From: Macrostomum lignano
Lineage: Eukaryota
DNA: 64,000 nt
Reading direction: 5' to 3'
Assembly (NCBI GenBank): GCA_002269645.1
Contig: NIVC01000129.1
Coordinates: forward strand, 728,755-792,754
Shown: positions 5,656-56,479 of the stretch, piece by piece
Layout of the letters: each line of letters starts with the position of its first letter
How positions within the stretch are numbered: the first letter of the stretch is position 1
Made by a program: the position numbers and the translations under genes
Notes under the pieces: model-generated
What the model saw: the letters and a program-made list of their open reading frames with translations, nothing else
What the model was told of the DNA's origin: nothing
Databases searched by the model: none

Positions 5656-5929
5656 AGTCCCCTTTAATAAGAATTTTAGCTATATGCCTGATATTTATAT
5701 AGGTCTTTATTTATATTTTAACTAACTTGAAAATATAGGTAGTTTTCAATTGTATAAATGCAAAGAACTTTTGTTACCAAATTGAAAGTTTAAACTATTA
5801 TTAAATTATCATATTTAGCATATTAGATTAAAATAAATTAATAATAATAGTTTGGTCCATAAGAGTAAATATAAAAATAAAATATTGATAAATAGTATCA
5901 ATATATATAGTATTTTTTATTAGAGGCAG

Positions 5930-6272
5930 GAGGGTTGTGTGCACCCTGGTGCACTTTAAGTGACATAGGCACACAAGCAAGAGGCATTACTGCCCATTCC
6001 ACCAACTCCCCTGAGCAAGCATACAAGCACATGGATATGTACGCAGGCACACATTCACACAGGAGTGTACAGCGGCCCTAACTTTATATTATCATTAGGC
6101 ATGTACACTTCATTGCGCCTTGGGGGGTTGGCTCTTAAGGTCATCAATTGCACAAGCAGAGCCAAGCCAATATTCCAATTCAGCCCCAAATTAATCTGAC
6201 TGCACTTAGAATCGAGCCTGGGTTGCTGGCACACCAGAGCAGCTGCACTACCGCTGGGCTATGGCCCCCCTT
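5930..6272 (-). mobile_element. tRNA-derived SINE, family A copy
   Basis: Minus strand begins GGGGCCATAGCCCAGCGGTAG (A-box-like) ... GGCTCGATTC (B-box-like); body contains AGGGCCGCTGTACAC shared with copies near 18.7 kb and 62 kb. Confidence 0.6.
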
Positions 6273-8265: not shown

Positions 8266-9216
8266 ATGTCAATTCGCATTCTGGAGACGCACATGGACAC
8301 CAAAGAGCATGCAGGCACAGAGGTGCCGCCGCCCGAAGCCACCAGCACAGAGCCAGTGGCAGCGCAGCCAGCCAATCAGCAGCCGCTATCGAAACGCGCG
8401 CAGAAGCGATTAAAGAAGCGCGAATTAGTGAAAGCGCTGCGCAAAGCCAAGCGCCAACAGTTAAAAGCCAGCGGTCAGAAGCCGCAACGGCACGGCAAAC
8501 GCCTGACCAAAGCGGCTGCAAACAGCATGAGCGACAGTTCCTGTAGAATCCGCGTAGTCATAGACTGCTCATTCGACTCTCTGATGCCGATTGGAGACAT
8601 CTGCAAGCTGTTCAACCAGCTGCAGCACTGCTATGGTTACAACAGGCGCAGTGAAGCCCCCATGCAGCTCTATGTGACCGATTTAAATGGCAAACTGCTT
8701 GACAAACTGAAATCAATTGGCACAGCCGACTATCTGAATTGGGATATCAACTGGCGTGAGGAATCCTACTTGAGTCTCTTCCCTAGGGATGAGATCGTCT
8801 ATCTGTGCAGCGAATCTGAGACTGTACTCGATCAGCTGAGCGATAACTGTGTGTATGTTATTGGCGGCCTTGTGGACCATAATCACTATCCTGGGCACTG
8901 CTTTGAGCTGGCCAAACAGCTGGGTTTGCGAACTGCCAAGCTGCCAATTTCTCAGCACATCAAATTGAATTCTCGTCAGGTGCTCACTGTGGATCAGGTG
9001 TTTCACCTGTTGCTCAAATACTCCAGCTGCCGCAATTGGGCCGAGACACTGCAGGCCGTGGTGCCGAAACGCAAAATTGTTGAATTGAAAGACGGCAAAG
9101 GTGAAACTTCCGGCGGCGCTGTGGTCGGAGAAAATACAGCAGTTGATGGCGATGATGCTGGGGATGAGGCTGATGAACAGGATGAAACTGATGATCAGGA
9201 TGAAGCTGATGATTAG
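8266..9216 (+). CDS. TRMT10A: tRNA (guanine-N1, position 9)-methyltransferase, TRM10 family (TRMT10A-like), single exon
   Basis: 316-aa ORF with TRM10 motifs: basic N-terminus (LSKRAQKRLKKRE), VVIDCSFDSLM, IVYLCSES, VYVIGGLVDHNHY, TAKLPI, VLTVDQVF, WAETLQAVVPKRK, then an acidic tail. Start is ATG 8266 or ATG 8293 (MDTKE). Confidence 0.92.
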   Translation: MSIRILETHMDTKEHAGTEVPPPEATSTEPVAAQPANQQPLSKRAQKRLKKRELVKALRKAKRQQLKASGQKPQRHGKRLTKAAANSMSDSSCRIRVVIDCSFDSLMPIGDICKLFNQLQHCYGYNRRSEAPMQLYVTDLNGKLLDKLKSIGTADYLNWDINWREESYLSLFPRDEIVYLCSESETVLDQLSDNCVYVIGGLVDHNHYPGHCFELAKQLGLRTAKLPISQHIKLNSRQVLTVDQVFHLLLKYSSCRNWAETLQAVVPKRKIVELKDGKGETSGGAVVGENTAVDGDDAGDEADEQDETDDQDEADD

Positions 9217-15495: not shown

Positions 15496-15584
15496 TAGTC
15501 AAGTTAGTTACAGCAACTCACAAGTAGTATGCAGTCTGATACAATACAATGGATTGGAAACCCGAACTCCAGAGCTCCAGAGAC

Positions 15585-18500
15585 ATGTCGCAGGACAGCC
15601 CAGCGCTCGATCGGCACTCAATCGAGACTGGACTTGGCAGCATCACCTGGTGGGGCTTCAGTCCGGCACTGGATCTGCAACAGGTTTGGCTCGATGCCAA
15701 CCGCTCTGAGCCAGCACAGACCATGCTGATTGTAGGCTCGGGCGATCAGAGACACCTGCTAACCACCCTTGCCAGGCTCAGGCGGCACTGTACATCCTCG
15801 ACACCATTGAAGATCTTCGTGTTGGAGACTGACTGCAGCCTGTACTGCCGGGCGATGCTGCAGCTGCTTCTGTGTCTGGACACTCGGGCCAGCGTGCAGG
15901 AGCGGGCCGAACTGTTTCTGGAGCTCTACGGCAACACGCTTGTGCGAGAGCAGACCGTGGATCACGTGACCAGACTGTGCCCGATGCTAATCCGATTGGT
16001 CACCGACCCGGAGTTCTGCCAGCAGACTGCGCCAATGCTGCAGCTGGGCGATTTGAAATTTCGCGAGCGCGACATTATGGAAGCTGTGTTCAAGTTCTGG
16101 AAGCAGGGCCTGGCCGATAGGAAAGGCTTCGATGCACAGCTGTGCTGGGATCTGCGGCTCAGGCAGCACCTGGGAGTCAGGTCAGTCTTTTATCATAACT
16201 TCGAATTTCCCATCCTTCTAGTCGCCTCTGCTGGCTAGATTCTTTTTTTAACGGCGTAAATTTGCCCATTCTCCCCAAATTCTCCCCAAATCTTCCTCAT
16301 TGTCCCCAATCTTATCGATTCTCCCCATTATCCCCAATCCTCCCAATCCTCTTTAATATTCTTATCATCTAAATTATCTCCATTTTCCCTCATTTTCCCC
16401 ATCGTGCCTAATCTTCCCCATCATCGCCAATCTTCCCCATCCCTAATCTTCCCCATCGTCGCCAATCTTCCCCATCCCTAATCTTCCCCATCGTCCCCAA
16501 TCTTCCCCATCGTCCCCAATCTTCTCCATCCTTCTCCATCCCTAATCTTCCCCATCGTCCCCAATCTTCCCCATCGTCCCCAATCTTCTCCATCCTTCTC
16601 CATCCCTAATCTTCCCCATCATCGCCAATCTTCCCCATCCCTAATCTTCCCCATCGTCCCCAATCTTCCCCATCGTCGCCAATCTTCTCCATCCTTCTCC
16701 ATCCCTAATCTTCCCCATCGTCCCCAATCTTCCCCATCCCTAATCTTCCCCATCGTCCCCAATCTTCCCCATCGTCGCCAATCTTCTCCATCCTTCTCCA
16801 TCCCTAATCTTCCCCATCGTCCCCAATCTTCCCCATACCCAATCTTCCCCATACCCAATCTTCCCCATACCCAATCTTCCCCATCCCTAATCTTCCCCAT
16901 CGTCCCTAATCTTCCCCATCGTCCCAATCTTCCCCATCCCTAATCTTCTCCATCCCCAATCTTCCCCATCGTCCCCAATCTTCCCCATACTTAATCTTTT
17001 CCATCCCTAATCTTCCCCATCGTCCCCAATCTTCCCCATCCCCAATCTTCCCCTTCGTCCCTAATCTTCCCCATCGTTCCCAATCTTCCCCATACCCAAT
17101 CTTCCCCATCGTCCCCAATCTTCCCAATATTCCAGTCTTGCCAATCTTCTCAATTGTCCCCAACTCTCCGCCCCATCCCCCAGGTACGATGCCATACCCA
17201 ACGTATTCGACTGGGACCACCAGATGCGGCTGGTCGAGCGGCCCAACGGCGCCCAGGTGAGCCGGCCCGAGTACCTGCACTGGCGCACCAAAGGCGTGGC
17301 ATTCCGGCTTCGAGAGGCCGCCTACGACGCCTCCAATCGAACCCTGTGTAGCGGAATTGTGCTCAGCGTGGCTGGCGAGCGGCATGCCAGGCGTGGTTAC
17401 TGGGGCGACATCGTGTGCAGCCCCTATCTGGGCTGGGGCCTGGTGTCCGAGTGGCCAGACTATGACAGGAGCGCCAACGGGCAGCGCGTGAACTCTGTTG
17501 GCGCCGTGTGCGAGTACAATGTGTGCAGCGTGATGCACGAGCTGAGCACTGGGACCAGGTATGAGCAGCAGCAGGCTGAAGGTGCGACAGCCACTGTTAC
17601 AGAGATTATTGAGGAGGAAACTGAGGAAGCTGGTGAAGCTAAACAGGATGACAACAAAGTTGAGAAATTGCCCGAGTCCAGTGACAAAGGAGACGGTGAG
17701 ATTTCGACTTTTCGATGCTTTAAATTAACCTGTTAATCTTATATCTAACCTTGATAAACTGAATTGCCCTTAGCAACCATTCTAAGAGTCACCCCTAGCA
17801 ACCATTCTAAGAGTCACCCCTAGCAACCATTCTAAGAGTCACCCATAGCAAACATTCTAAGAGTCACCCCTAGCAACCATTCTAAGAGTCACCCATAGCA
17901 ACCATTCTAAGAGTCACCTCTAGCAACCATTCTAAGAGTCACCCCTAGCAACCATTCTAAGAGTCACCCCTAGCAACCATTCTAAGAGTCACCCCTAGCA
18001 ACCATTCTAAGAGTCACCCCTAGCAACCATTTTAAAAATCGGCCCTTAGCTACCACTGCAAAAATTAGGCCTTAGCAACTATTCTAAGAATCGGGCCTTA
18101 GCAACCACTCCGAGAATTAGGCCTTAGTAACCATTCCAAGAATCGTCCTTAGCAACCATTCCAAGAATCGTCCTTAGCAACCATTCTAAGAATCACCGTT
18201 AGCAAGCATTCTAAGAATCGACCCTTAGCAACCATTCCAAGAATCGCCCCTAGCAACCATTCCAAGAATAAACCTTAGCAACATTCTAAAAAACAGCCCT
18301 AGGAACTATTCTAAGAATCACCGTTAGCAAGCATTCTAAGAATGTACCCTTAGCAACCATTCCAAGAATCGACTCTTAGCAACCATTCCAAGAATAAACC
18401 TTAGCAACATTCTAAAAAACAGCCCTAGGAACTATTCTAAGAATCGTCCCAACAAGCATTCCAAGAATCGCCCCCTTAAACGCCTGCACCCAGGCCTCCT

Positions 18501-22118: not shown

Positions 22119-24548
22119 TCATTCGACTCCGTGCGCGAATATCATCACAATGCCAGGCTCCAGCATCAGGCTGGGAGGCATGTGGCGATTCTCGCAGGCC
22201 AACAGCAGCACCGCCTGCTTGCCGGGCACCCGGCGAATCACGTAGCTGTCGTATTGGCGCCGGTTGGTCTGCCGCTGCTCCAGGGAGGCAACGCCGTCTG
22301 GCCAGCCGCGCTCGTGCGCTCGGTCCATCAGCTCGGTTAGTAGCCTGCGGGTTGCCGAAGTTTTGTATAGCAGCAAAGTAGCTAAACTCTTATACTGCTG
22401 CTGTCAGGAGTAAAACAGTAGTATGTGGGTGCATACTGTATTTTACAGTGCCTTTTAGGACTTTTACAGCAGAGCACACAGCCCATGGCCCTCCAGTCAC
22501 ACAGCAGAGCACACAGTCCATGGCCCTCTAGTCACACAGCAGAGCACACAGTCTATGGCCTCCCCAGTCACACAGCAGAGCACACAGTCTATGGCCTCCC
22601 CAGTCACACAGCAGAGCACACAGTCTATGGCCTCCCCAGTCACACAGCAGAGCACACAGTCTATGGCCTCCCCAGTCACACAGCAGAGCACACAGTCTAT
22701 GGCCTCCCCAGTCACACAGCAGAGCACACAGTCTATGACCTCCCCAGTCACACAGCAGAGCACACAGTCTATGGCCTCCCCAGTCACACAGCAGAGCACA
22801 CAGTCTATGGCCTCCCCAGTCACACAGCAGAGCACACAGTCTATGGCCTCCCCAGTCACACAGCAGAGCACACAGTCTATGGCCTCCCCAGTCACACAGC
22901 AGAGCACACAGTCTATGGCCTCCCCAGTCACACAGCAGAGCACACAGTCTATGGCCTCCCCAGTCACACAGCAGAGCACACAGTCTATGACCTCCCCAGT
23001 CACACAGCAGAGCACACAGTCTATGGCCTCCCCAGTCACACAGCAGAGCACACAGTCTATGGCCTCCCCAGTCACACAGCAGAGCACACAGTCTATGGCC
23101 TCCCCAGTCACACAGCAGAGCACACAGTCTATGGCCTCCCCAGTCACACAGCAGAGCACACAGTCTATGGCCTCCCCAGTCACACAGCAGAGCACACAGT
23201 CTATGGCCTCCCCAGTCACACAGCAGAGCACACAGTCTATGGCCTCCCCAGTCACACAGCAGAGCACACAGTCTATGGCCTCCCCAGTCACACAGCAGAG
23301 CAGTCTATGGCCTAACCTGCTCGGACAGCCAGTCTCGGCCAGCGACCGGCGCACCACGGCCTGCAGCACCAGGTCTGGTGTGGAGATGACGCCGCCCCAG
23401 CGGGCTACCCGCGCCAGCCGAAGGCTACGCGCCCAGGCCAGCTGAAGGCTCTCATCGCCAGCCATTGAGGCGTCCCCGGCCGCTGATGGCAGGGCGGAGC
23501 GAGAGGGCAGCGGGGCCGGCGGGGAGATGCCGGCAGATAGCAGCTGCCTGCGAAGGTCGTGCACAGCTTGACGGAGCTCCGCCTGCTCGCAGCGCAGCTG
23601 GGAGACGATTTTGCTGTTTTTCTGCAATGCCGGGGAGGCCTGGGCATCTGGGAGGCTGACCCAGCAACTGGGGATCTGGGAGGCTGCCCAGCAACTGACA
23701 CTCTGGGAGGCTGGCCCAGCAACTGAGGATCTGGGAGGCTGGCCCAGCAACTGACACTCTGGGAGGCCGGCCCAGCAACTGGGGATCTGGGAGGCTGGCC
23801 CAGCAACTGGGGATCTGGGAGGCTGGCCCAGCAACTGGGGATCTGGGAGGCTGGCCCAGCAACTGGGGATCTGGGAGGCTGGCCCAGCAACTGGGGATCT
23901 GGGAGGCTGGCCCAGCAACTGAGGATCTGGGAGGCTGGCCCAGCAACTCCGGATCTGGGAGGCTGGCCCAGCAACTCCGGATCTGGGAGGCTGGCTCAGC
24001 AACTGAGGATCTGGGAGGCTGGCCCAGCAACTGAGGATCTGGGAGGCTGGCCCAGCAACTGAGGATCTGGGAGGCTGGCGCAGCAACTCCGGATCTGGGA
24101 GCCTCACCGCCTGAATGTCGTCAACAAGGAGCCGCAGTGCCCGCACGCAGCAGTGCTCAGCCAGCTGGTCGCTGGGCACCATGAGGCCGCAGCCGCTGCC
24201 GCAGGGCACGGGCCTGCTGGGATTGTACTCGCACTGGGCTGCGTGCTGAGCAGCTGAGGCCAGCTTGACCCGGGCGCCGCAGCCCAGCTGCTGGAAATCG
24301 CAGGCCACGTCGAGCCGGCTGAGCAGGTTGCGCAGAATTCTTGGCGCCGGTTTCAAATGCAGCGACAGCAACGGCTGCCGGTCAATGGGGCAGGTGGGGT
24401 TCAGCCGCAGCCACTGGTCGATGCAGCCGGTGCAGAAGGTGTGCTCGCAGTCCGGCGCCTGTACCGGAGCGTCCAGCACCCCGCCGCAGATCGGGCAGAT
24501 CAGCTCTTCGTCCACTTCGCCTTCGAATCTCGCCAGCTCGAATCCCAT
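22119..24548 (-). CDS. RNF41: E3 ubiquitin ligase RNF41/NRDP1, 3 exons
   Basis: Exons 24548-24108, 23621 (or 23639)-23317, 22344-22119. RING MGFELARFEGEVDEELICPICGGVLDAPVQAP..CEHTFC, then RWGGVISTPD, AHERGWP and PGIVMIFAHGVE match the RNF41 N- and C-terminal domains. Confidence 0.93.
22480..23312. repeat. 36-bp minisatellite in RNF41 intron 2
   Basis: About 23 near-perfect copies of CAGTCTATGGCCTCCCCAGTCACACAGCAGAGCACA. Confidence 0.96.
23645..24105. repeat. 28-bp minisatellite in RNF41 intron 1
   Basis: About 16 copies of CAGCAACTGAGGATCTGGGAGGCTGGCC variants. Confidence 0.94.
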
Positions 24549-24611
24549 GGCTGCGAGATTTGGGGAGCTGAGGACTGCAATCATCAGATGCAACCTAAGT
24601 TGCTCCCTGCA

Positions 24612-25545
24612 ACCTAACACTATCTGACACTGTGTCTGACACTACCTAACACTATCTGACACTGTGTCTGACACTACCTAACACTATCTGACACTGTGTC
24701 TGACACTACCTAACACTATCTGACACTGTGTCTGACACTACCTAACACTATCTGACACTGTGTCTGACACTACCTAACACTATCTGACACTGTGTCTGAC
24801 ACTACCTAACACTATCTGACACTGTGTCTGACACTACCTAACACTATCTGACACTGTGTCTGACACTACCTAACACTATCTGACACTGTGTCTGACACTA
24901 CCTAACACTATCTGACACTGTGTCTGACACTACCTAACACTATCTGACACTGTGTCTGACACTACCTAACACTATCTGACACTGTGTCTGACACTACCTA
25001 ACACTATCTGACACTGTGTCTGACACTACCTAACACTATCTGACACTGTGTCTGACACTACCTAACACTATCTGACACTGTGTCTGACACTACCTAACAC
25101 TATCTGACACTGTGTCTGACACTACCTAACACTATCTGACACTGTGTCTGACACTACCTAACACTATCTGACACTGTGTCTGACACTACCTAACACTATC
25201 TGACACTGTGTCTGACACTACCTAACACTATCTGACACTGTGTCTGACACTACCTAACACTATCTGACACTGTGTCTGACACTACCTAACACTATCTGAC
25301 ACTGTGTCTGACACTACCTAACACTATCTGACACTGTGTCTGACACTACCTAACACTATCTGACACTACCTAACACTATCTGACACTGTCTGACACTACC
25401 TAACACTATCTGACACTGTGTCTGACACTACCTAACACTATCTGGCACTGTCTGACACTACCTACTACCTAACACTACGCTCGTATCTGACACTATCTGA
25501 AACTGTACCTAACACTCTGAAACTAATGTCTGACACTATCTGACA
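24612..25545. repeat. 32-bp minisatellite between RPS11 and RNF41
   Basis: ACTACCTAACACTATCTGACACTGTGTCTGAC, about 23 essentially perfect copies plus a degenerate end. Confidence 0.96.
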
Positions 25546-28798: not shown

Positions 28799-36207
<7,409 letters not shown>

Positions 36208-44255: not shown

Positions 44256-44863
44256 AGGGTGAGCCAAAAGTTTCCGGAATTTTTTAGAATCGAACTTTTA
44301 GTTAATTTTTGTCTATGGAAAAGCTTAAAAGCAGCAACCATCTACTATGCTGTTGGCCAGCCTTATCATCACTCTTTAGCTTAACATTGCTCAGTTTCCC
44401 AGACCCTGCCTACTTAAGCCAACAAACGCATCCGATGGAACTGCCAAGAACTGAATGGCGAGCAATTCTGCTCAGCCACTTTCATGCGGGACGCAACGCA
44501 GCAGAGGCACATCGCAAGTTGTTGCAGCTGATGGGCCCACATGCACCCTCCAAGTCGTCGGTGTACGACTGGTTCTCTCGCTTTGCTGAGGAGAACTATG
44601 AGCTGAAGGACAAGCCGAGGTCAGGCCGACCCCCTGCTGCTGATGGCGATGCCGTTCTCCAAGCCCTTGAGGACAATTATCCAGACTACAGCGTGCGCAA
44701 GCTGTCAGCCGCTACTGGGGTGTCCTATGGCACGGTCCAGCGGAGCCTGCATGCTGCGGACAAGGTGCCGAAGAAGCCAACTCTGGTTGGCTGCCGAAGA
44801 GACCACTTTTTTACCATTTTTCGGTTTTGCACATGCTAAAAATATGCTCGCTGGACACCCTAA
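44256..44863 (+). mobile_element. Mariner/Tc1-family element fragment encoding only the transposase DNA-binding HTH domains
   Basis: ATG 44435: WRAILLSHFHAGRNAAEAHRKL...SVYDWFSRF..E.LKDKPRSGRP...YSVRKLSAATGVSYGTVQRSL (Mos1-type paired HTH); stop 44839 before any DDD domain; imperfect ends TAGGGTG / CACCCTA. Confidence 0.8.
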
Positions 44864-46464
44864 CTAGGGCCTATAGTATGACTTAAATTGTACTTACAAT
44901 TTAAAGGGTCTAGTAAAAATGCACCAAGGATTCATTCTCCAAGGTAGCTACATAGCCTATGCCATATCAAGGGGTCATCAAATGTGTGCTGGGGCCTATG
45001 AGACATTGCAACAAAAAAGGACCTTTTTGCCACTCTGTATTAAAAATGTGCTAGGCCTAGATGGCTATCTTCCATAGCAACTTTTCTAATAGAGGTTTTA
45101 AGGACATTTCTGACACTATCTACTCTAATCTAACATTTGTTAGGCCTATTTAATAATGGCCAAATGGCCAATATTTAATAATTACTAATTGGCCATGACC
45201 ATGACATGAGTCATGACTATGACAATTGACAATATAGCATACCAAACTGAAAGATAAATATATCTAATAATTGTTTTTAAAGTAATAAGTGTTTTGTTTT
45301 ATGTTTTTTATATACAATTTATGTAATTATATTATTGTTATTATTAGGCCTATTCATTACATTTATAAGCCAAATTACTAAGTATTATTATATATAATAT
45401 ATATAGACCTATAATAATATTATGCAAGAAACCTTAATGAAGTTTCCTAAATTCACCAAGGAATCTCTTAGATCCTTAAAGGAGCCTCCTAGCTCTTAAA
45501 AGACATTTAGGAGTTAGGAGTTAGGACACTTAAGGATTTAGAAGTTAAGAGTATTCTATAACATAGGCCTCAAGTCCTCCTCATCCTTGAAGCTATTATT
45601 GGCCATGGATTAGCTAAGCATGGCAAAAAGGTAGTAGTCAGTAAATGCAAGATCTAGGTTATAAGGTAGATAGAAAAGAATGCCTAACTCAGTGCCAACA
45701 GTTTCTTATGCATTAACTAAGCTTTGTGCACTAGTGCATTGTCATGCAAAATGATGACCTTGCAAGGTTCTAGGCACTTATTGGTCAAAACCTATTGCAG
45801 ATGGTCTTGGATACAATTAGACCAACCTTGGATACAATTTAACATTCTAGAATTAGCAAAAAAACCTAGTCTAAGTAAGGAGCTTATTTTCATCCTTGTT
45901 AGGCCTAATATCTAGTTATACTTTAACAACTTTGTTAGAAGGCATATTGGTAATGATAGATTGTATTTCATATTCATATATACTTTTGTTTTGGGCTTGC
46001 TAAGCACATTGCCAAAACAAGTGTGTTTTATATTGTGCTGCTAATCTCCTGGTAAACTAGTATAGAATCTAGATTTTGACAATGAAGAAAAGACAATGTC
46101 CTAGGCTTAAGGCAAGATAGAAGAAGGTTAGCAACAGCAACATAGATAGGCCTACCTTAGTAAATATTCAATGTATTAACTGTAACACCCTTTAGAAGAT
46201 ATTTGTGAAAAAAAAGAAAATTTAACTTTGAATAATCTTATTTCACAGGAAAAATGCAAAGTTGGGCAAAGCTTCCTATTGTGCAAAAAGCAAGGAAAGA
46301 GCCAGTAGAGAAGCCACCTCAAGCAACTTGTAGTCATGCAACACTAAGCCCACTTAAACAAGCCATAGATTCTGCTAAACAAAAGCTGAGTATAACTAGT
46401 ATTGATATCTATTCACTCAATCACTCTACCTAGAGGCAGCTTTTCACTCACTAAGAATGTGGTA

Positions 46465-47220
46465 AGCTGGGGCGGTTTCTTGTGGTAGGTTAGGGATAGA
46501 TACTTGTGGTAGGTTAGAGATGGATTCTTGTGGTAGGCTAGGGTGGTTTCTTGTGGTAGGTTAGGGGTGGATTCTTGTGGTAGACTGAGACGGTTTCTTG
46601 TGGTAGGCTGGGGCGGATTCTTGTGGTAGGTTAGGGACAGATACTTGTGGTAGGTTAGAGATAGATTCTTGTGGTAGGCTAGGGTGGTTTCTTGTGGTAG
46701 GTTAGGGGTGGATTCTTGTGGTAGACTGGGACGGTTTCTTGTGGTAGGCTGGGGCGGATTCTTGTGGTAGGTTAGGGACAGATACTTGTGGTAGGTTAGA
46801 GATAGATTCTTGTGGTAGGCTAGGGTGGTTTCTTGTGGTAGGTTAGGGGTGGATTCTTGTGGTAGACTGGGATGGTTTCTTGTGGTAGGCTGGGGCGGAT
46901 TCTTGTGGTAGGTTAGGGACAGATACTTGTGGTAGGTTAGAGATAGATTCTTGTGGTAGGCTAGGGTGGTTTCTTGTGGTAGGTTAGGGGTGGATTCTTG
47001 TGGTAGACTGGGACGGTTTCTTGTGGTAGGCTGGGGCGGATTCTTGTGGTAGGTTAGGGACAGATACTTGTGGTAGGTTAGAGATAGATTCTTGTGGTAG
47101 GCTAGGGTGGTTTCTTGTGGTAGGTTAGGGGTGGATTCTTGTGGTAGACTGGGACGGTTTCTTGTGGTAGGCTGGGGCGGATTCTTGTGGTAGGTTAAGG
47201 GCAGTTTCTTGGGGCAATGT
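46465..47220. repeat. Second array of the BAG-intron satellite, organised as a 141-bp (6-monomer) higher-order repeat
   Basis: Equivalent GTTTCTTGTGGTAGGCTGGGG starts at 46593, 46734, 46875, 47016 and 47157. Confidence 0.95.
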
Positions 47221-47894: not shown

Positions 47895-50800
47895 ATGCAC
47901 CGGCCCAGCCTGTCAGCTTGCCAGCTCATTCTTCGCTCATTCGGTCGCAGCGGTGGCAACATTGTTGCCAGCCGCCGGTTCGCTTCATCAATGAATGTGC
48001 GCGATGCCTTGAACTCCGCCATGAAAGAGGAGATCGAGCGCGACCCTAATGTCTTCCTAATGGGCGAAGAGGTCGCACAGTACGAGGGTGCTTATAAAGT
48101 GTCCAAGGGTCTGTGGAAATTGATGGGAGATAAACGCGTGATTGACACTCCCATCACTGAGATGGGCTTTGCCGGTGAGTGGCAAACTACGAGTATGTCT
48201 ATGTCTTTCATCACCTGACTAATCACCTTTCTAATCCCTTTAGAAGTCACTTATCAACCAGTCAGCTACCTGAGAAATCCTTCCCTAGCAGCCTGAGAAA
48301 TCCCTCCTTAGCAACCTGAGAAATCCTTCCCTAGCAACCTGAGAAATCCCTCCCTAGCAACCTGAGCAACCCCCCCCCCTAGCAACCTGAGAAATCCCTC
48401 CCTAGCAACCTGAGAAATCCTTCCCTATCAGCCTGAGAAATCCTTAGCAACCTGAGAAATCCTTCCCTAGCAACTATTGTGTACCTGGTAAATCCTCCCC
48501 TAGAAATCATTTAGAAACTTAAGAAATACTCCCACTAGCAACAATTCAACCCCTGAATAAATGCTTTAGCAACCACTCAGTACCTCGAACCCCTTTTGGG
48601 CCACTCTACATCACTGATTAAAAGTGAAATACTTGTCGCAATCGCCACCTCAGGTCTGGCCGTGGGAGCAGCCATGGCCGGTCTCCGGCCGATCTGCGAG
48701 TTCATGACCTTCAACTTCTCGATGCAGGCCATAGATCACGTGATCAATAGTGCGGCTAAAACCTACTACATGAGCGCCGGCGATGTCAAGGTGCCAATCG
48801 TATTTCGCGGGCCCAACGGAGCCGCTGCCGGTGTGGCGGCCCAGCATTCGCAGGACTTCGCCTCATGGTACTCTCACTGCCCCGGGCTGAAAGTGAGTCT
48901 TTCAATAGCCGCCCTGCTTCTGATTTTGCGTTGTGGTAACTTTTTCCAGCGCCTATAGCAACCGAATTAGACATTATTAGACATTACATCCCTAGCAACC
49001 AGATGTGGCAGCCCTAGCAACTAGATTTAACAGCCTTAGCAACTAGATTTGACATCCTTTGCAACCCTAGTAACCAGATTTGACAGCCCTAGCAACCAGA
49101 TTTATCATCTCTAGCAACCCGATTTGGCATCCCTAGCAACCAAATTTGGATTTCCTAGCAACCAGATTTGGCAGTCCTAGAAATTAGATTTGAGCGTCCT
49201 TAGCAATCCATAGTTCACATCCCTAGCAACCGGATTTTGAATCTCTAGCCTTATATTTAGCATCCCTAGCAACCAGATTTCGAATCTCTAGCCTCATATT
49301 TATCATCCCTAGCAACCAGATTTGGAATCTTTAGCCTCAAATTTAGCATCCCTAGCAACCAAATTAGGATTTCCTAGCAACCATACGAGTATTTGGCATT
49401 CCTAGCAACTAAATTTAGCATCCTCGGCAATCAAGTTTGGCGTCCCTAGCAACCCGGTTTGACATGACATCCTTAGCAACCAGATTTAGCGCCCCTAGCA
49501 ACTATATTTGTCCAACACTGAAAGGTACCTGGTAGCTTTCCAACATCTTGCAAAAATTTCTAGTGCATTTTATTGAGAAACTGACAGGCACGCCCCATCC
49601 TTTGCACTCTTGCGCAGGTCGTGTCCCCGTGGAACAGCGAGGACGCTCGCGGCCTATTGAAGGCCGCCATCCGGGACAACGATCCTGTTGTTTGCCTCGA
49701 AAACGAAATGATGTACGGCGTCAGCTTTGAAGTGTCGCCCGAGTGCGAGTCTAAGGATTTTCTCATTCCCATTGGCAAGGTGACGAGCTTAATTTTTTTT
49801 AACATTTCTCTGTTCTATTTATCTCTAGCATTGTAAGTCATATTCCAGCCTCATTGTGAGTCATATTCCAGCCTCATTGTGAGTCATATTCCAGCCTCAT
49901 TGTGAGTCATATTCCAGTCTCATTGTGAGTCATATTCCAGTCTCATTGTGAGTCATATTCCAGCCTCATTGTGAGTCATATTCCAGCCTCATTGTGAGTC
50001 ATATTCCAGTCTCATTGTGAGTCATATTCCAGCCTCATTGTGAGTCATATTCCAGCCTCATTGTGAGTCATATTCTAGTCTCATTGTGAGTCATATTCCA
50101 GCCTCATTGTGAGTCATATTCCAGCCTCATTGTGAGTCATATTCCAGTCTCATTGTGAGTCATATTCCAGCCTCATTGTGAGTCATATTCCAGTCTCATT
50201 GTGAGTCATATTCCAGTCTCATTGTGAGTCATATTCCAGCCTCATTGTGAGTCATATTCCAGTCTCATTGTGAGTCATATTCCAGTCTCATTGTGAGTCA
50301 TATTCCAGCCTCATTGTGAGTCATATTCCAGTCTCATTGTGAGTCATATTCCAGTCTCATCGTGAGTCATATTCCAGTCTCATTATGGCTCATATTCCAA
50401 TCTCATTGTGAGTCATATTCCAGTCTCATTGTGAGTAATATTCCAGTCTCATTGTGAGTCATATTCCAGTCTCATTGTGAGTCATATTCCAGTCTCATTA
50501 TGGCTCATATTCCAGTCTCACTGTGAGTCATATTCCAGTCTCATTGTGAGTCATATTCCACTCTCATTATGGCTCATATTCCAATCTCATTGTGAGTCAT
50601 ATTCCAGTCTCATTGTGAGTCATTCCAAGCTCATCATAGCTCATAGTTCAGTGAACTTCGCTGCCAAATCCATCCCAAATCAATCCGAATCCCAAATCCC
50701 CCAACCGCAGGCCAAGATAGAAATCCCCGGCAACCACATCAGCCTCATCTCGTACGGCAAGTTTGTCGGCCTCTGCGTCGAAGCCGCCGCCGAGCTGGCC

Positions 50801-51118
50801 AAAGAGGGCATCCAGTGCGAGGTGCTGAACCTGCGCACCCTCCGGCCACTGGACGAGGAGGCCATCGTGAAGTCGGTGATGAAGACTCACCACGTGGTCA
50901 CGGTGGAGAGCTGCTGGCCCCAGTGCGGCATGGGGGCGGAGATCGCGGCCAGAATCATGGAGTCGCAGGCATTCGACTATCTGGACGCTCCGCTGACCAG
51001 AATGACCGGGGCGGATGTACCGATGCCCTACGCCCAGGCCCTGGAGGCGGCGGCCCTGCCTCAGGTGGCCGACATCGTCCGAGTGGTTCGTCGCACTTTA
51101 AATCGCGCGGCCAAGTAA
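47895..51118 (+). CDS. PDHB: Pyruvate dehydrogenase E1 beta subunit, mitochondrial, 4 exons, about 362 aa
   Basis: Exons 47895-48174, 48654-48892, 49618-49779, 50711-51118. Presequence-like N-terminus, [69 protein letters not shown]. Confidence 0.97.
48270..48570. repeat. About 24-bp CCTAGCAACC-core minisatellite in PDHB intron 1
   Basis: CCCTAGCAACCTGAGAAATCCCTC variants, about 10 copies. Confidence 0.88.
48950..49540. repeat. About 22-bp degenerate CCTAGCAACC-core minisatellite in PDHB intron 2
   Basis: CCCTAGCAACCAGATTTGGCAT variants, about 20 or more copies. Confidence 0.85.
49835..50625. repeat. 23-bp minisatellite (GTGAGTCATATTCCAGCCTCATT) in PDHB intron 3
   Basis: About 34 copies with CAGCC/CAGTC variants. 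Confidence 0.96.
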
Positions 51119-51660: not shown

Positions 51661-52691
51661 TTGCGTTGTAATTTAGTCATATAAATGCGTCTGTTGAGCT
51701 TCTTTTTAAACAGTCAAGATGTCCCTTGCAACAATGTCGATGGGATCTAACTAATAAGACAGCAGTCTACTACTTCGTAATGCAGGAATTGCAGTGGCTT
51801 GATGTTGCTCCCAGACTCCTTAATATACAAATTATATCTCCCGCCAATATTGCTTTTGAAGTGCGCGTTGAACACTTGAAAATGAATAGATTTCTTCGCT
51901 AATTTTAATTTGCCGCGGATAGTAATTTTCTAGTTCTTTCTCTAGATACTACTTATAGTTGCTCGTGAGTAGTAGCGTCGGCATTCGGCCGAAAGCGACT
52001 ATATTATAATTTAGTTTTGTTAATCGTCCGCAGCAATCAAATTTTTGTTGTTCGTCTGTTTTCTCGACTTTTCTTTATTTCTTTGCTACTAAATTACTGG
52101 AACGTAAAGTAGTATATTAGGCACATTGTAGTTATAAATATAATAAAAATCGTATAGAAGAAATACATATATGCACATTGACAGCACTGAGTGGATTCTA
52201 ATCTAACTGGTACACCTCTGCTGTCTTCTTGCTACTAATTTTGCTGGATTCCACACTGCTAGTATCTGTCATCACCAAATTGCCTGTTTTACAAGTGTTC
52301 AACACTTCTTTTTTGATTCAGAAAAATATTACCACGGACCATGGGTCCAGTAGACACTGGTGTGCTGGGTGGAATAGCATAGATTTAAGATAATGATCGG
52401 GAAACATGGTTTTGAAATAAATACCACCAGATGGTAGTTTATTAATTTACACAGCTTTTTGTACAACCCTCGTAACATTTTGTAATGAGTAATATACATT
52501 TATATACAAGCATGATCTGTTACTATAGGCGTGTGTACAGTGGTGAATCTTCAAAAATGTGAGTTAGTATGACTTAAAACACAAAGATTCTGGTCCTTGA
52601 TGACGTGGAGGTCCTAGGAAAAAGGTAAACTCAAAAAACAGCTGTCTGCTTGCGTCCGATTGTCATGTCACCCTTGCACGCAGTTCGTACA

Positions 52692-55552
52692 TTAAGAAGC
52701 GTTACCTAGAGAGCTCGGACTCTTCAGCCTGAAGTTCAGCCTCTCTTCAACTTCCTCAATCATGTCCAACTCTTTGTCCATTTTGATACTCAACGATCGC
52801 ATTCTAAGCAGGCAATGCTTGAGCTGCTCAGCGTCGCGCGAGAACTTGGCGAACAGGTACAACTCGTAGATGTCGTTAGAGTCCTCTTCAGAACACAGCT
52901 CCGAGTACCACTGCGACACGAGCTCGCCGGACCGTTCTGGGATGAGACACATGCTGAGAACTTTGAGAGCGGCGTCGAAATTGACAAAGTAGGCGAAGTC
53001 GAGCAGCAGGTGGCCCGGCAGCTGGTAGAAGCCGAAAGCCGACTCGTCGAGTTTTCCGGTCACGTGATCGGACAGGAACCCGAAGTCCAGCTTCTCATTA
53101 AAGTAGAAGCAGAACTTCCAAGCGCAGTTGCTAGTCTCCAGCTGATGGAGAACAATTCTTTTGGCATCGTCCACAGACTGGGGATGCTGGAAGTCGATGC
53201 TTCTCTTCGCTTGAATGCCTTCGGAATCTTTTAGCACCTGCCTGGCCGATGACAAACTGCCAAGCTTCAGGTGTAGCAGCACTCTTAGCACCGCTCTAAC
53301 AGTAGCGGCTGCTCTCTCCGGCAGAGAGTCGATGTCGCGACTAAGATCTTCGCAGCGCTCACCTGTGCAGCGCGGGTTGCCAATGTCGGCGAGAATTTTA
53401 AACAGCATGGGATAAATATCCTGATACCGGGCCAGCTGACCCGACTCAAGTTTTTTCGGCCGCTTGAATGGGGTGACGAGTTCGATGAGGCTGAACGGCT
53501 GGAACACGAACGGCGACTCCGAGCCAAGCCGCAGTGGCCGCAGCTGCTCGCTCATGTAGCTCGCCAGAATCGAGCGCACGTCGCGCCGCGCCGCCTGCAG
53601 GCAGCGAACGAGGGCTCGCCTGTCAGCGGCCGAGCCAGTCTTGAAGTACACCCAGGCATCCCGGATGAAGAAGTGCGGCATGCAGTTTGAGGCTCCGTAC
53701 TCTTCGCTCTCGATGACGAACTGCTCGAAACGGTGCAGAGCGGCAACGACCAGCCACTCCAGCCTGTCTGCCGTCCATTGCTCCTCGGGAATCTCGCACA
53801 CCAGATAGAACATGAGCGTCTTCGAGTGGTAGGACTTCAGCCCTTTAGCAGCCAATACTTGCTTGAATATGTACTTAACAAGCACGAATACCTGGCCCTG
53901 GCAGGTGCTCAGCTGTCGAAGAATCGCCTTCTCCAACGAAGTGCAACTGATGCGCATTTCCATCACGTCGGTGCATTCCGGTCGCACAGACCGGACGAAT
54001 TCCACTTCCGGATTAGCCGGAAATTCAAATCGCTTTGGCAGCTTTGACAGACTTGTGCGCAGCTCAATCGGGATGCAGCAGCTCGGCCGGAACGAGCAGA
54101 AGTCCATCGATGGCCGCACTCCCACGCCTATATCCGTCCTGCTGGGCTTGTCGCCGCACACGTCCGGCAGTCTGAGGAAGCCCTCCTCCAGCCTGTAGGT
54201 TGGCGCACCAGACACTTGCAGGAGCCCTCAACGTGCACCGGATTCCTCTGTTGCACGCTCATGTCAACATCGGAGCTGCTGGCCACGCTTCCGTTCAGGC
54301 GCTGCAGGCTGCTGCCCCAGCCATCGGCGAAACTTCCTGACGCTTTGCGCTTGTCGAATCGGTCGCGCAGCTCTGAGATGTTGCCCAGCTCAGCCAGGAG
54401 GTCCGCCGCCCCAGCCTGGAAGACTGCGCGGTGGCTGCTGTAGCCGGAGTCGAGCATAGCGCGATGGAGCTTCAACGAGAACTCTTCAGAGGACAGTTGA
54501 ACTGCCTGTTCGTTCAGCACCAACTCGAACTGGTAGAGTTTGCAAATCTTGCTGGAGTCGCAGCTCGGAGTGCCGTTCAAATTAACGATGAGAATCTGTG
54601 CGCAGCTGTGACTTCCGTGAACCTCCGCGACATCGAGAACTGTGCGACCCCTTGAATCAGTAGCTTTCGGGTCTAGCTTTCCGGACAGCAGCCTCATCGT
54701 TTTGCTGCTGTCATGCGTGGCGGCTACGTGCAGAGCTGTTCCATGATCACTGCTGCTGCTAATCACATCGTCCATGTTGTCCAGGAGTAGCTGCGCGACC
54801 GTGTGATGATCTCGCTGGCAGCTGTACATCAAAGGAGTGAACCCGTTCTTGTCCCGCGCCTCTAGCATCTGTCTGATCGTTTCCTTGACGCAGTTCGACA
54901 GCAAATACTGCGCAATCTCCAGGTGACCATCGCGACAGGCAAAGTGCAATGCGGTGAGGCCCCTGTACTGCGCGCAGGTCCTGTCCACGCCCGCACCCAG
55001 CAGCATCCGCACGATGGTGGCGTGCCCGGGTCTGGCCGACACGATCAGCGCCGTGGACTTGTTGCTGTTCCTGGCGTTGAGGTCAAGCGAACGCAACTTC
55101 AGTAGAGAGGCCACCAGTTTCTCGTGTCCCCTGCTAGCGGCCATTATCAGGGGGGTTGTGCCGTCCTCCCTGCTGAGGTTGCAGTCGATGCTGGGGTGGT
55201 CGATGAGCGCCTGGGCGAGCTTGACCTCGCCTTTGCCGACCGCGTCAACCAGCATCGGGCTGCTCATCCCGCCGGGTTCGTCCCGCTTCTGGTTGGGATC
55301 GGCCTGCCCGGCCTTGACCATGGCTTCGAGCTCGGCATAGTTTCTTGCCTGAATCAAATCAGCAACTGAGGACGCGTTCCGTTGCCAAGTGTCGCGTACA
55401 AGCCTTCTGTCGCTGCTGACTCGCCGGAAACGGAGCCGCTTGGACTTGCGGTGCACTGCCAGCCCGATGAGAACTGTCGCCAGAGCGACAGCTGCCAGCG
55501 CAAGCGCTAGCAGTTGCGAAATTTCCAACACCGCCGCTTCAGTTTGTGACAT
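52692..55552 (-). CDS. Putative transmembrane + ankyrin-repeat + Mab-21/cGAS-like nucleotidyltransferase (cGLR-like) protein, interrupted by one frameshift near 54215
   Basis: ORF 54128-55795: hydrophobic helix LLALALAAVALATVLIGLAVH, about 7 ankyrin repeats (TPLIMAASRG, TALHFACRDG, TPLMYSC, TALHVAA), then SGSFADGWG...SDVDM (NTase GS..DxD). Overlapping ORF 52692-54215: MRISCTSLEKAIL, VLVKYIFK, LKSYHSKTLMFY, CMPHFFI (Mab-21 C-terminal motifs). Likely start ATG 55552 (or 55618). Confidence 0.72.
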
Positions 55553-56479
55553 GATGTGACGCTGGAACTGGGACCCCTTCCCGTGGATTTGCCCTGGACA
55601 GTCGCCCCCCCCCCGCATGTGTCTTTTGTACCCTGGCCCCGTCCCAACCGCCTGTGTTGATATAGTAGGTACTATAAATATGTCGATCATTGCCAGAAAT
55701 AGCAGTCGAGAATAGCCGATAATTGCGTCTATAGAAACTGTAACAGTAGGAACTAAAAAACTGTATAAGGTACAACTGCAGTTGTCATCAATCATTGCTA
55801 ATTATTTCGCATTTCTTGCCGGAACAGCAAATCACAAGCAGCATGTTATCAGTGCAGGCACCTCTAGGAAAGCCCGGCCTTGATAGCAAGATAGCAAAAC
55901 GAGACAGACGAGGCTTAATGAGGGGAGTGGGAATCTTCTGGGCACTGACAAGCCCAAAAGCAGTTATTTGTGCATAAATAAAAAGCTAGGATAAATAGAA
56001 GTGTAACTGCACTAGGTCGTGATAAAAAATCGATGCACAGATTGAAGGATAAATGCAAAATCACTAAGAATGAATCGAACATCTTCTCCCCTGCAGCATT
56101 GACGCAGAGACAAATTGCAGACGCATTTTTTGCTACGCCACCTGCTATTCCTCCTTCTGCCACTGCTGGGACACCAATTTCATGAAAGTTGCAATTCAGA
56201 CCAAGCTGAAGCAGGCAATCTCTGAATGCGATGCTGATTTCAATGGATTTGCCAGCGAAGCCGATTCTTGACGCGAACCTGGGAGTCTCCCAGTTCCTAC
56301 CCAATTGACATTTTACATGTAAGAGTGAAAAATAAAGGGAAAATTGAAAAGATTCCTAAGACGCTCATCTGCATGTGAGAAGTGGCTTTTCAGGCTTCGC
56401 CTCGGAGATTCTGCATAGACAGTCTCCTCGTTTCAGTAGGTTATTATACATTAGATGAGGTAATTGAGTGTGTGTGGCG

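Follow-up and report, generated by a model that had tools for sequence, protein, structure and literature searches.

Does a locus on the minus strand of a Macrostomum lignano contig (NIVC01000129.1, assembly GCA_002269645.1) encode a membrane-anchored relative of the cyclic nucleotide synthase cGAS, and is the gene still intact? We examined this question in a stretch of 64,000 nucleotides (nt) of that contig (positions 728,755 to 792,754 of the forward strand, hereafter the window), where an original prediction, made from the letters alone, had placed a membrane-anchored ankyrin-cGAS-like (Mab-21) protein. Our analysis indicates that the locus is probably an intronless, frameshift-interrupted member of a lineage-specific macrostomid radiation of ankyrin-containing cGAS-like receptors (cGLRs), which, with its frame restored, would read as a membrane-anchored cGLR. 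The parts of the gene, with positions counted from the first letter of the window, are listed below (ORF, open reading frame; NTase, nucleotidyltransferase; AF2, AlphaFold2).

52692-55552, minus strand: whole gene, about 953 codons with no introns and one frameshift, delimited from the ORFs, the collinear alignment with homologues and the frame switch in tblastn
52692-52694, minus strand: stop codon
54128-55795, minus strand: ORF1, with MSQTEAAV..., the hydrophobic helix, HRKSKRLRFRR, ankyrin repeats and SGSFADGWG...SDVD
52692-54215, minus strand: ORF2, with SMDFCSF, RISCTSLEKAIL, LKSYHSKTLMF, CMPHFFI and a long helical tail
55454-55522, minus strand: predicted transmembrane signal-anchor helix ISQLLALALAAVALATVLIGLAV, residues 11-33 counted from the Met at 55552, from hydropathy
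55421-55453, minus strand: basic juxtamembrane cluster HRKSKRLRFRR, about +7
54578-55369, minus strand: ankyrin array of 7-8 repeats, about residues 62-325, from Pfam and repeat cores
53549-54493, minus strand: cGAS-like (cGLR/Mab-21) domain, made up of NTase core and helix bundle and crossed by the frameshift, from AF2, Foldseek and hhalign
54332-54337, minus strand: catalytic G406 and S407 in GSFADGWG, after the first modelled strand
54263-54271, minus strand: catalytic D428-V-D430, 20 residues past GS, at the start of modelled strand 96-100
54196-54212, minus strand: frameshift zone with one base missing, from three-frame translation, family alignment and the tblastn frame change
54102-54104, minus strand: third catalytic Asp, D484 in RPSMDF, 51 residues past DVDM, in modelled strand 149-157
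53655-53903, minus strand: Mab-21 C-terminal (HhH/H2TH-like) domain, including LEKAIL, QGQVFVLVKY, LKSYHSKTLMF and CMPHFF
52695-53540, minus strand: C-terminal alpha/beta domain specific to the family, about 280 aa long and carrying the motifs HPF, DSAWKFCF-like and NFDA

Fold and modules of the encoded protein

The cGLRs have been described by the motif h[QT]GS-X8-20-[DE]h[DE]h-X50-90-h[DE]h (Li et al. 2023, PMC9980059), together with homology across the core and helix bundle and predicted structural homology. The active site of the window protein, spaced as A-S-G-S, X20, D-V-D-M, X51, M-D-F, agrees with this motif with one deviation, a Ser instead of Gln/Thr before GS; the screen list of the same study took in family members with Val, Cys or Thr at this position (PMC9980059). 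The NTase signature SGSFADGWG...SDVD and the third acidic residue in SMDFCSF, both picked out in the original prediction, supply GS, DxD and D in full. Among the aligned domains of the homologues described below, the Gly is conserved in 85 of 87, the Ser in 86 of 87, each Asp of DxD in 82 of 87 and the third Asp in 93 of 100, and 66 of 75 domains (88%) have all five catalytic residues, which argues that catalysis is under selection.

The region from the NTase to the C-terminus was modelled with AF2 from a 13-sequence family alignment, giving a mean predicted local distance difference score (pLDDT) of 81.6 and a predicted template modelling score (pTM) of 0.83. In the model GS follows the first strand, the next strand opens with DVD, and a later one holds D484. 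This order of GS, DxD and later Asp is that expected for NTases of the Pol-beta type. When the model was compared with the PDB by Foldseek, the top 50 matches consisted exclusively of cGAS, Cv-cGLR1, Sp-cGLR1, MB21D2, Tc-cGLR, MiD51 and MAB21L1, with a best E-value of 5.7e-7 at probability 1.00 and TM-scores by target of 0.43-0.57 over about 300-400 columns. Model and search together provide the predicted structural homology expected of a cGLR, and the comparison with cGAS proposed alongside the original prediction came out in its favor.

Profile comparison gave a similar picture for the second half of the domain. With hhalign, the family matched a six-sequence cGAS/cGLR profile at 98.8% probability (E 8e-17), pairing RPSMDF with ISVDI (in ISVDITLAL) of human cGAS and placing D484 on that Asp, which we take to be D319, the third catalytic Asp of the human enzyme. 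LEKAIL, KSYHSKT and MPHFF were also paired with their cGAS counterparts. In a single-sequence comparison with human cGAS, the helix bundle alone was aligned (57% probability). The same region matched Mab-21_C in Pfam (PF20266, 26.4-28 bits vs a cut-off of 24.1) and, by sequence, the Sp-cGLR1 structure 8gjy in the PDB (E 7.9e-5). A set of conserved His and Cys residues, H440 (54232-54234), C445 and C447 (54212-54220) and C492 (54078-54080), flanks the frameshift site and the third-Asp strand; among family domains, 80 of 87 keep the His, 79 of 85 keep C447 and 78 of 100 keep C492. This set may be a structural zinc site, placed differently from the zinc thumb of cGAS.

Downstream of the helix bundle, the C-terminal domain of about 280 aa is conserved across homologues and was modelled by AF2 with a pLDDT of 84.6 and a pTM of 0.86. 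It had no significant structural match in the PDB (best E 0.33) or BFVD (best E 0.23), and no match in Pfam. The TPR-like matches that it drew were weak (E at least 0.33, TM-score about 0.2) and were treated as noise.

At the other end of the protein, the N-terminal hydrophobic helix, the basic residues behind it and the roughly seven ankyrin repeats that had been predicted were all recovered. The hydrophobic segment has a mean Kyte-Doolittle value of 2.7 over 19 residues, the maximum of the protein, and at 23 residues the helix appears too long for the core of a cleavable signal peptide. Given the cluster HRKSKRLRFRR on its C-terminal side, the positive-inside rule would put the remainder of the protein in the cytosol. 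The 7-8 ankyrin repeats were matched in Pfam by Ank_2 (E 1.2e-35), Ank (9e-27), Ank_4 and Ank_5, and NCBIfam returned only generic ankyrin-driven matches, all far under their cut-offs.

The interrupted reading frame

Read from the ATG at 55552, ORF1 begins with MSQTEAAVLE, continues through the 23-residue hydrophobic helix, HRKSKRLRFRR and the ankyrin array, and then reads KASGSFADGWGSSLQRLNGSVASSSDVDM...VHVEGSCKC. The start of ORF2 reads ...SGAPTYRLEEGFLRLPDVCGDKPSRTDIGVGVRPSMDFCSF, with the Mab-21 motifs downstream in the same frame. The two ORFs lie in different frames and overlap by 88 nt. Both are open for about 500 codons each, and the chance of the 507-codon second frame being open is (61/64)^507, or about 3e-11; because both long frames are open and homologues match the repaired protein over its full length, the pattern is not due to chance. 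The layout given in the original prediction was largely borne out, since the gene has no intron of conventional size, every listed motif was located on the minus strand, and the estimate of about 950 aa for the fused protein compares with about 953 aa once one base is restored. Its upper boundary at 55618 does coincide with an in-frame ATG, but the ATG at 55552 is an equally possible start, the helix being near the N-terminus with either. At the 3' end, a possible splice donor (CTAG followed by GTAAC) overlaps the last codons (52614-52705, minus strand), and with a polypyrimidine tract and AG about 90 nt past this candidate donor, the gene could have a short extra exon as an alternative C-terminus. 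The sequence also contains an AATAAA signal, at 52438-52443.

The homologues read ...FHFEGMCKCADPAGGYCRLEEGH... in a single frame (C-x-C, then Y..GH), whereas the window splits this segment into VHVEGSCKC and SGAPTYRLEEGF; therefore one nucleotide is missing within 54196-54212. In tblastn, similarity in frame -1 stops at 54212; in frame -3 it sets in at 54212 with some homologues and at 54194 with others. A minimal repair reads ...EGSCKC-S-GAPTYRLEEG.... The break lies downstream of DxD and upstream of D484, so that the catalytic domain is crossed by a one-base frameshift. As assembled, the frame is lost after ...EGSCKC and runs through 27 unrelated residues to a stop at 54128; the truncated product would therefore end before D484, the helix bundle and the C-terminal domain, which rules out catalysis. 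The locus is thus a cGLR gene or pseudogene by descent, and not a demonstrably expressible enzyme.

An intron in place of the frameshift was also considered. Frame -1 homology extends to 54212 and frame -3 homology is present by 54196, which leaves at most 16 nt for an intron, and when every GT...AG interval of the right phase at the junction was enumerated, none fitted. The sole in-phase GT-AG candidate, of 23 nt (54193-54215), would remove the conserved second Cys. To our knowledge, 23 nt is below the length of any animal intron. Splicing at the conserved intron of the paralogues, about 18 codons downstream, lies past the frame change and cannot rescue the frame.

When the repaired protein was aligned with its homologues, the match formed a single collinear domain (P0122, E 3.5e-74; P0121, E 1e-108; range 1e-108 to 1e-50), with single-domain alignments spanning query residues 14-612 of 619. 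On these alignments, both halves belong to one gene. The original prediction had allowed that they might prove to be two unrelated transcripts, one for an ankyrin protein and one for a Mab-21 protein. This is effectively refuted: the ORFs do lie in different frames with their 88-nt overlap, but the NTase is split across the break, with GS and DxD in ORF1 and the third Asp and helix bundle in ORF2, the homologue chains carry both halves in the same order, and ORF2 has no ATG upstream of the third-Asp motif. The nature of the break itself is a closer matter. Apart from the missing base, no further stop or shift interrupts the roughly 953 codons. It follows that the copy was either disrupted very recently, as a pseudogene or null allele, or acquired a one-base error during assembly, two cases that the sequence alone cannot tell apart. 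That the assembly or its consensus is at fault, and that the animal has an intact gene for a functional 953-aa membrane-anchored ankyrin-cGLR, is a serious possibility which nevertheless falls short of probable. It would account for a single defect in so many otherwise open codons, for the catalytic and family-invariant residues all kept on either side of the break, and for a 507-codon downstream frame that would be open by chance at only about 3e-11. But the local sequence at the break, AAGTGTCTGGTGCGCCAACC, contains no homopolymer run, where consensus indels usually fall, and this slightly favors a true mutation. In addition, young pseudogenes are common in large, fast-evolving immune gene families, and exact look-ups of the window ORFs found no exactly matching protein on record.

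The Macrostomum family and related systems

An exhaustive phmmer search with ORF2 returned 103 cluster representatives, 68 of them below 1e-10, and was the only search that recovered the family; in word-indexed searches, ankyrin proteins crowded out other matches to the full-length query, and the C-terminal query and the family profile both returned nothing. The source was looked up for ten of the phmmer matches, nine of which are from M. lignano, the tenth being a JGI/IMG protein. The homologues examined have a common domain order, namely ankyrin repeats, GS..SDxD..RPxxD, Mab-21_C and the C-terminal domain, with the pattern VGSFxEGWGNSL..LDG....SDIDV, C-x-C, RPAxD, Mab-21_C and then about 280 conserved aa. 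The window protein has the collinear NTase, the Mab-21_C domain, the C-terminal domain of about 280 aa and the N-terminal ankyrin repeats that mark members of this radiation. No paralogues were found elsewhere in the 64-kb window by tblastn.

M. lignano ankyrin-cGLRs such as PAA75531.1 (= P0122) and PAA65033.1 (= P0125) are collinear with the window copy over the NTase core, the bundle and the C-terminal domain, have the GSFxEGWG...SDxD...RPxxD signature and the conserved His/Cys positions in common with it, and most of them also carry an N-terminal ankyrin array. The window copy shows only 24-35% identity to any known member, and differs from its paralogues in its transmembrane anchor (clear elsewhere in P0134 only), in its frameshift and in being without two conserved introns. 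The paralogues have these introns, of about 100 bp to 3.7 kb, at the boundary between ankyrin array and NTase and about 61 residues after GS; the mapped positions are exact for P0122 and P0125 and approximate for P0127 and P0123 (loci L001-L004). The absence of both from the window gene suggests intron loss or a retrogene origin. The family also includes proteins of other compositions: P0138 joins a cGLR and ankyrin repeats to a caspase domain (Peptidase_C14, 2.7e-25), P0155 combines WSC, ankyrin, cGLR and RING, P0134 has a signal-peptide-like start and a transmembrane helix followed by ankyrin and cGLR, and P0121 consists of two tandem cGLR units. Some of these fusions may be gene-model chimeras.

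Ankyrin-cGLR fusions were already described by Li et al. (2023; PMC9980059), who reported that 87% of cGLRs are single-domain and that some have TPR or ankyrin modules or tandem fusions. Their screen of 140 enzymes even included M. lignano members of the family of the window gene as samples 89-93, namely PAA45980.1, PAA86972.1, PAA57558.1, PAA93208.1 and PAA68676.1 (PMC9980059); PAA45980.1 matches P0150 over the construct sequence given in the screen list. The flatworm phylum is reported to have largely lost cGLRs, with Macrostomum an exception that has already been noticed. The suggestion of a novel sensor with an unusual architecture was hence overstated: the ankyrin-cGLR architecture and the Macrostomum radiation are known already, and what is less ordinary here is the transmembrane anchor, the missing introns and the unmatched C-terminal domain.

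Compared with animal cGLRs in general, the predicted fold of the window protein is like those of cGAS, Cv-cGLR1 (8GJW), Sp-cGLR1 (8GJY), Tc-cGLR (7LT2) and MB21D2 (7LT1), the active-site motif and its spacing are the same, and the third-Asp strand and helix bundle align at the 98.8% probability given above. Fusion to ankyrin repeats is likewise known from cGLRs of corals and other animals. The window protein is unlike them in that its core is too divergent for PF03281, its GS-to-DxD spacer is at the upper limit (20), it has Ser and not Gln/Thr before GS, and it has an extra unmatched C-terminal domain and a membrane anchor. For the anchor, MiD49 and MiD51 (MIEF2 and MIEF1) offer a precedent among proteins of the Mab-21 fold, being likewise N-terminally anchored in a membrane with a cytosolic Mab-21-type NTase fold behind the anchor. 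The signal-anchor with its basic flank may resemble an outer-membrane anchor. The MiD proteins have lost their catalytic residues and bind ADP or GDP, whereas the window protein keeps GS/DxD/D; they are also without an ankyrin array or a C-terminal extension. The locus thus does not belong with the membrane adaptors of degenerate active site. Unlike OAS2/OAS3-type and multi-domain cGLR fusions, the window protein carries only one NTase domain, and the Foldseek top 50 included no OAS structure. It is some of its relatives, with tandem cGLRs (P0121) or caspase, RING and WSC fusions, that resemble the domain-shuffled immune NTases of Li et al. (2023; PMC9980059).

Possible function and surroundings of the locus

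If restored, the protein would be tethered by its N-terminal signal-anchor helix and would have four modules in the cytosol: 7-8 ankyrin repeats, an NTase with GS/DxD/D, the Mab-21 helix bundle and the family-specific C-terminal domain (about 280 aa). If it most likely acts as cGLRs do, the ankyrin module, the C-terminal module or both might bind a ligand or a partner protein, and this binding would switch on the NTase at the membrane surface, which would then make a nucleotide second messenger for a downstream receptor.

Several observations weigh against a membrane-anchored cGLR. The root mean square deviations of the Foldseek matches are high, mostly 6-9 Å. Neither single-sequence nor profile hhalign extends to the GS/DxD half of the core; the predicted superposition of the catalytic acids on those of cGAS therefore stands for the third Asp (98.8%) and was not reproduced by hhalign for the first two, although the N-terminal half of the core and these two acids can probably be assigned on cGAS from motif, strand order and Foldseek coverage. 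The profiles proposed for checking the prediction gave a divided result, with Ank (E 1.2e-35) and PF20266 (26.4 bits) found and PF03281 matching neither the repaired full-length protein nor the isolated NTase region (E up to 1); eight intact homologues had no match to PF03281 either (E up to 0.01). A clear transmembrane helix ahead of the ankyrin array was seen, besides the window copy, only in P0134 among 121 family sequences, and the 5' end of the gene is not fixed by the sequence (55552 vs 55618). Finally, samples 89-93 bear no 'active' note in the screen of Li et al. (PMC9980059), and the enzymatic activity of the clade is therefore unproven.

One alternative is a non-enzymatic Mab-21 scaffold comparable to MiD49/51 or MAB21L1, that is, a membrane adaptor that binds a nucleotide or partner and makes no messenger. 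Foldseek matched MiD51 and MAB21L1 significantly (E 8e-5 to 7e-4), MiD51 is likewise N-terminally membrane-anchored, and none of the five screened relatives was reported active. We nevertheless regard such a scaffold as unlikely, because GS, DxD and D are complete in the window protein, as in 88% of family domains, which argues for selection on catalysis, because the cGAS/cGLR structures outscore MiD51 in Foldseek, and because a negative from a screen with nucleic-acid ligands only and truncated constructs is weak evidence. Still less credible, and in our judgment highly improbable, is an origin by retroposition as a processed pseudogene that never functioned. Introns missing at both paralogue positions and the presence of a frameshift would suit such an origin, but at 24-35% identity to its paralogues the copy still has about 953 open codons and all catalytic and invariant residues, and must therefore have been under purifying selection through most of its history. 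Moreover, no poly(A) tract was seen past the stop, and intron loss or a functional retrogene fits the structure equally well.

A membrane-anchored cGLR, recently or only apparently interrupted, thus remains our preferred reading. A bolder extension of it, which we put forward tentatively and consider doubtful, is that the radiation is a working, diversified immune-receptor repertoire of more than 100 divergent paralogues, some with caspase, RING or WSC ectodomain modules, in which the C-terminal domain would be a new ligand-sensing or regulatory module and the present locus a membrane-tethered variant signalling from an organelle or the plasma membrane. Its signalling might involve a non-canonical nucleotide product, with a receptor that is not STING. 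Should the animal carry an intact gene, the range of animal cGLRs would gain a membrane-tethered form, and the gene would point to an expanded clade, with a conserved extra unmatched domain, in a regenerating flatworm model; this clade could then be used to ask what cGLRs sense, and what they signal to, in a phylum said to have lost most of the pathway. In its present form the locus is one more member of a catalogued family, possibly a dead one.

Other genes were recognized in the window:

8266-9216, plus strand: TRMT10-like tRNA m1G methyltransferase, intronless
15549-16238 and 17224-17736, plus strand: DUF4470/DUF4471 (DNAAF3-like) gene, two exons split by a minisatellite
44309-44839, plus strand: Mos1/mariner transposase helix-turn-helix fragment
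about 50700-51118, plus strand: last exon of a gene resembling pyruvate dehydrogenase E1-beta (Transketolase_C, 5.4e-41), which runs towards the cGLR gene in convergent orientation

An ORF at 22497-24620 (minus strand) has a U-box/RING-like N-terminus and a USP8_interact domain, resembling RNF41/NRDP1, and runs on into 28-bp and 36-bp minisatellites, the repeats being embedded in or fused to coding sequence. Minisatellites are very dense at 5067-35830, 46458-47211 and 49829-50623 (26 Tandem Repeats Finder rows with a score of at least 400); they include a 5.7-kb array of a 24-bp unit with strong GC skew at 30132-35830, and several arrays yield long spurious ORFs in multiple frames. Repeats also identify M. 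lignano or a close congener as the source of the window. At 5913-6269 lies a tRNA-derived repeat resembling a short interspersed nuclear element, whose minus strand has the A/B-box-like GGCCATAGCCCAGCGGTAG...GGCTCGATTC; over 363 bp it shares 89.8% identity with a copy in the 3.7-kb intron of the M. lignano P0122 gene (L001, 8451-8811), and further repeats of the window share 78-88% identity with L002, another locus of this species.

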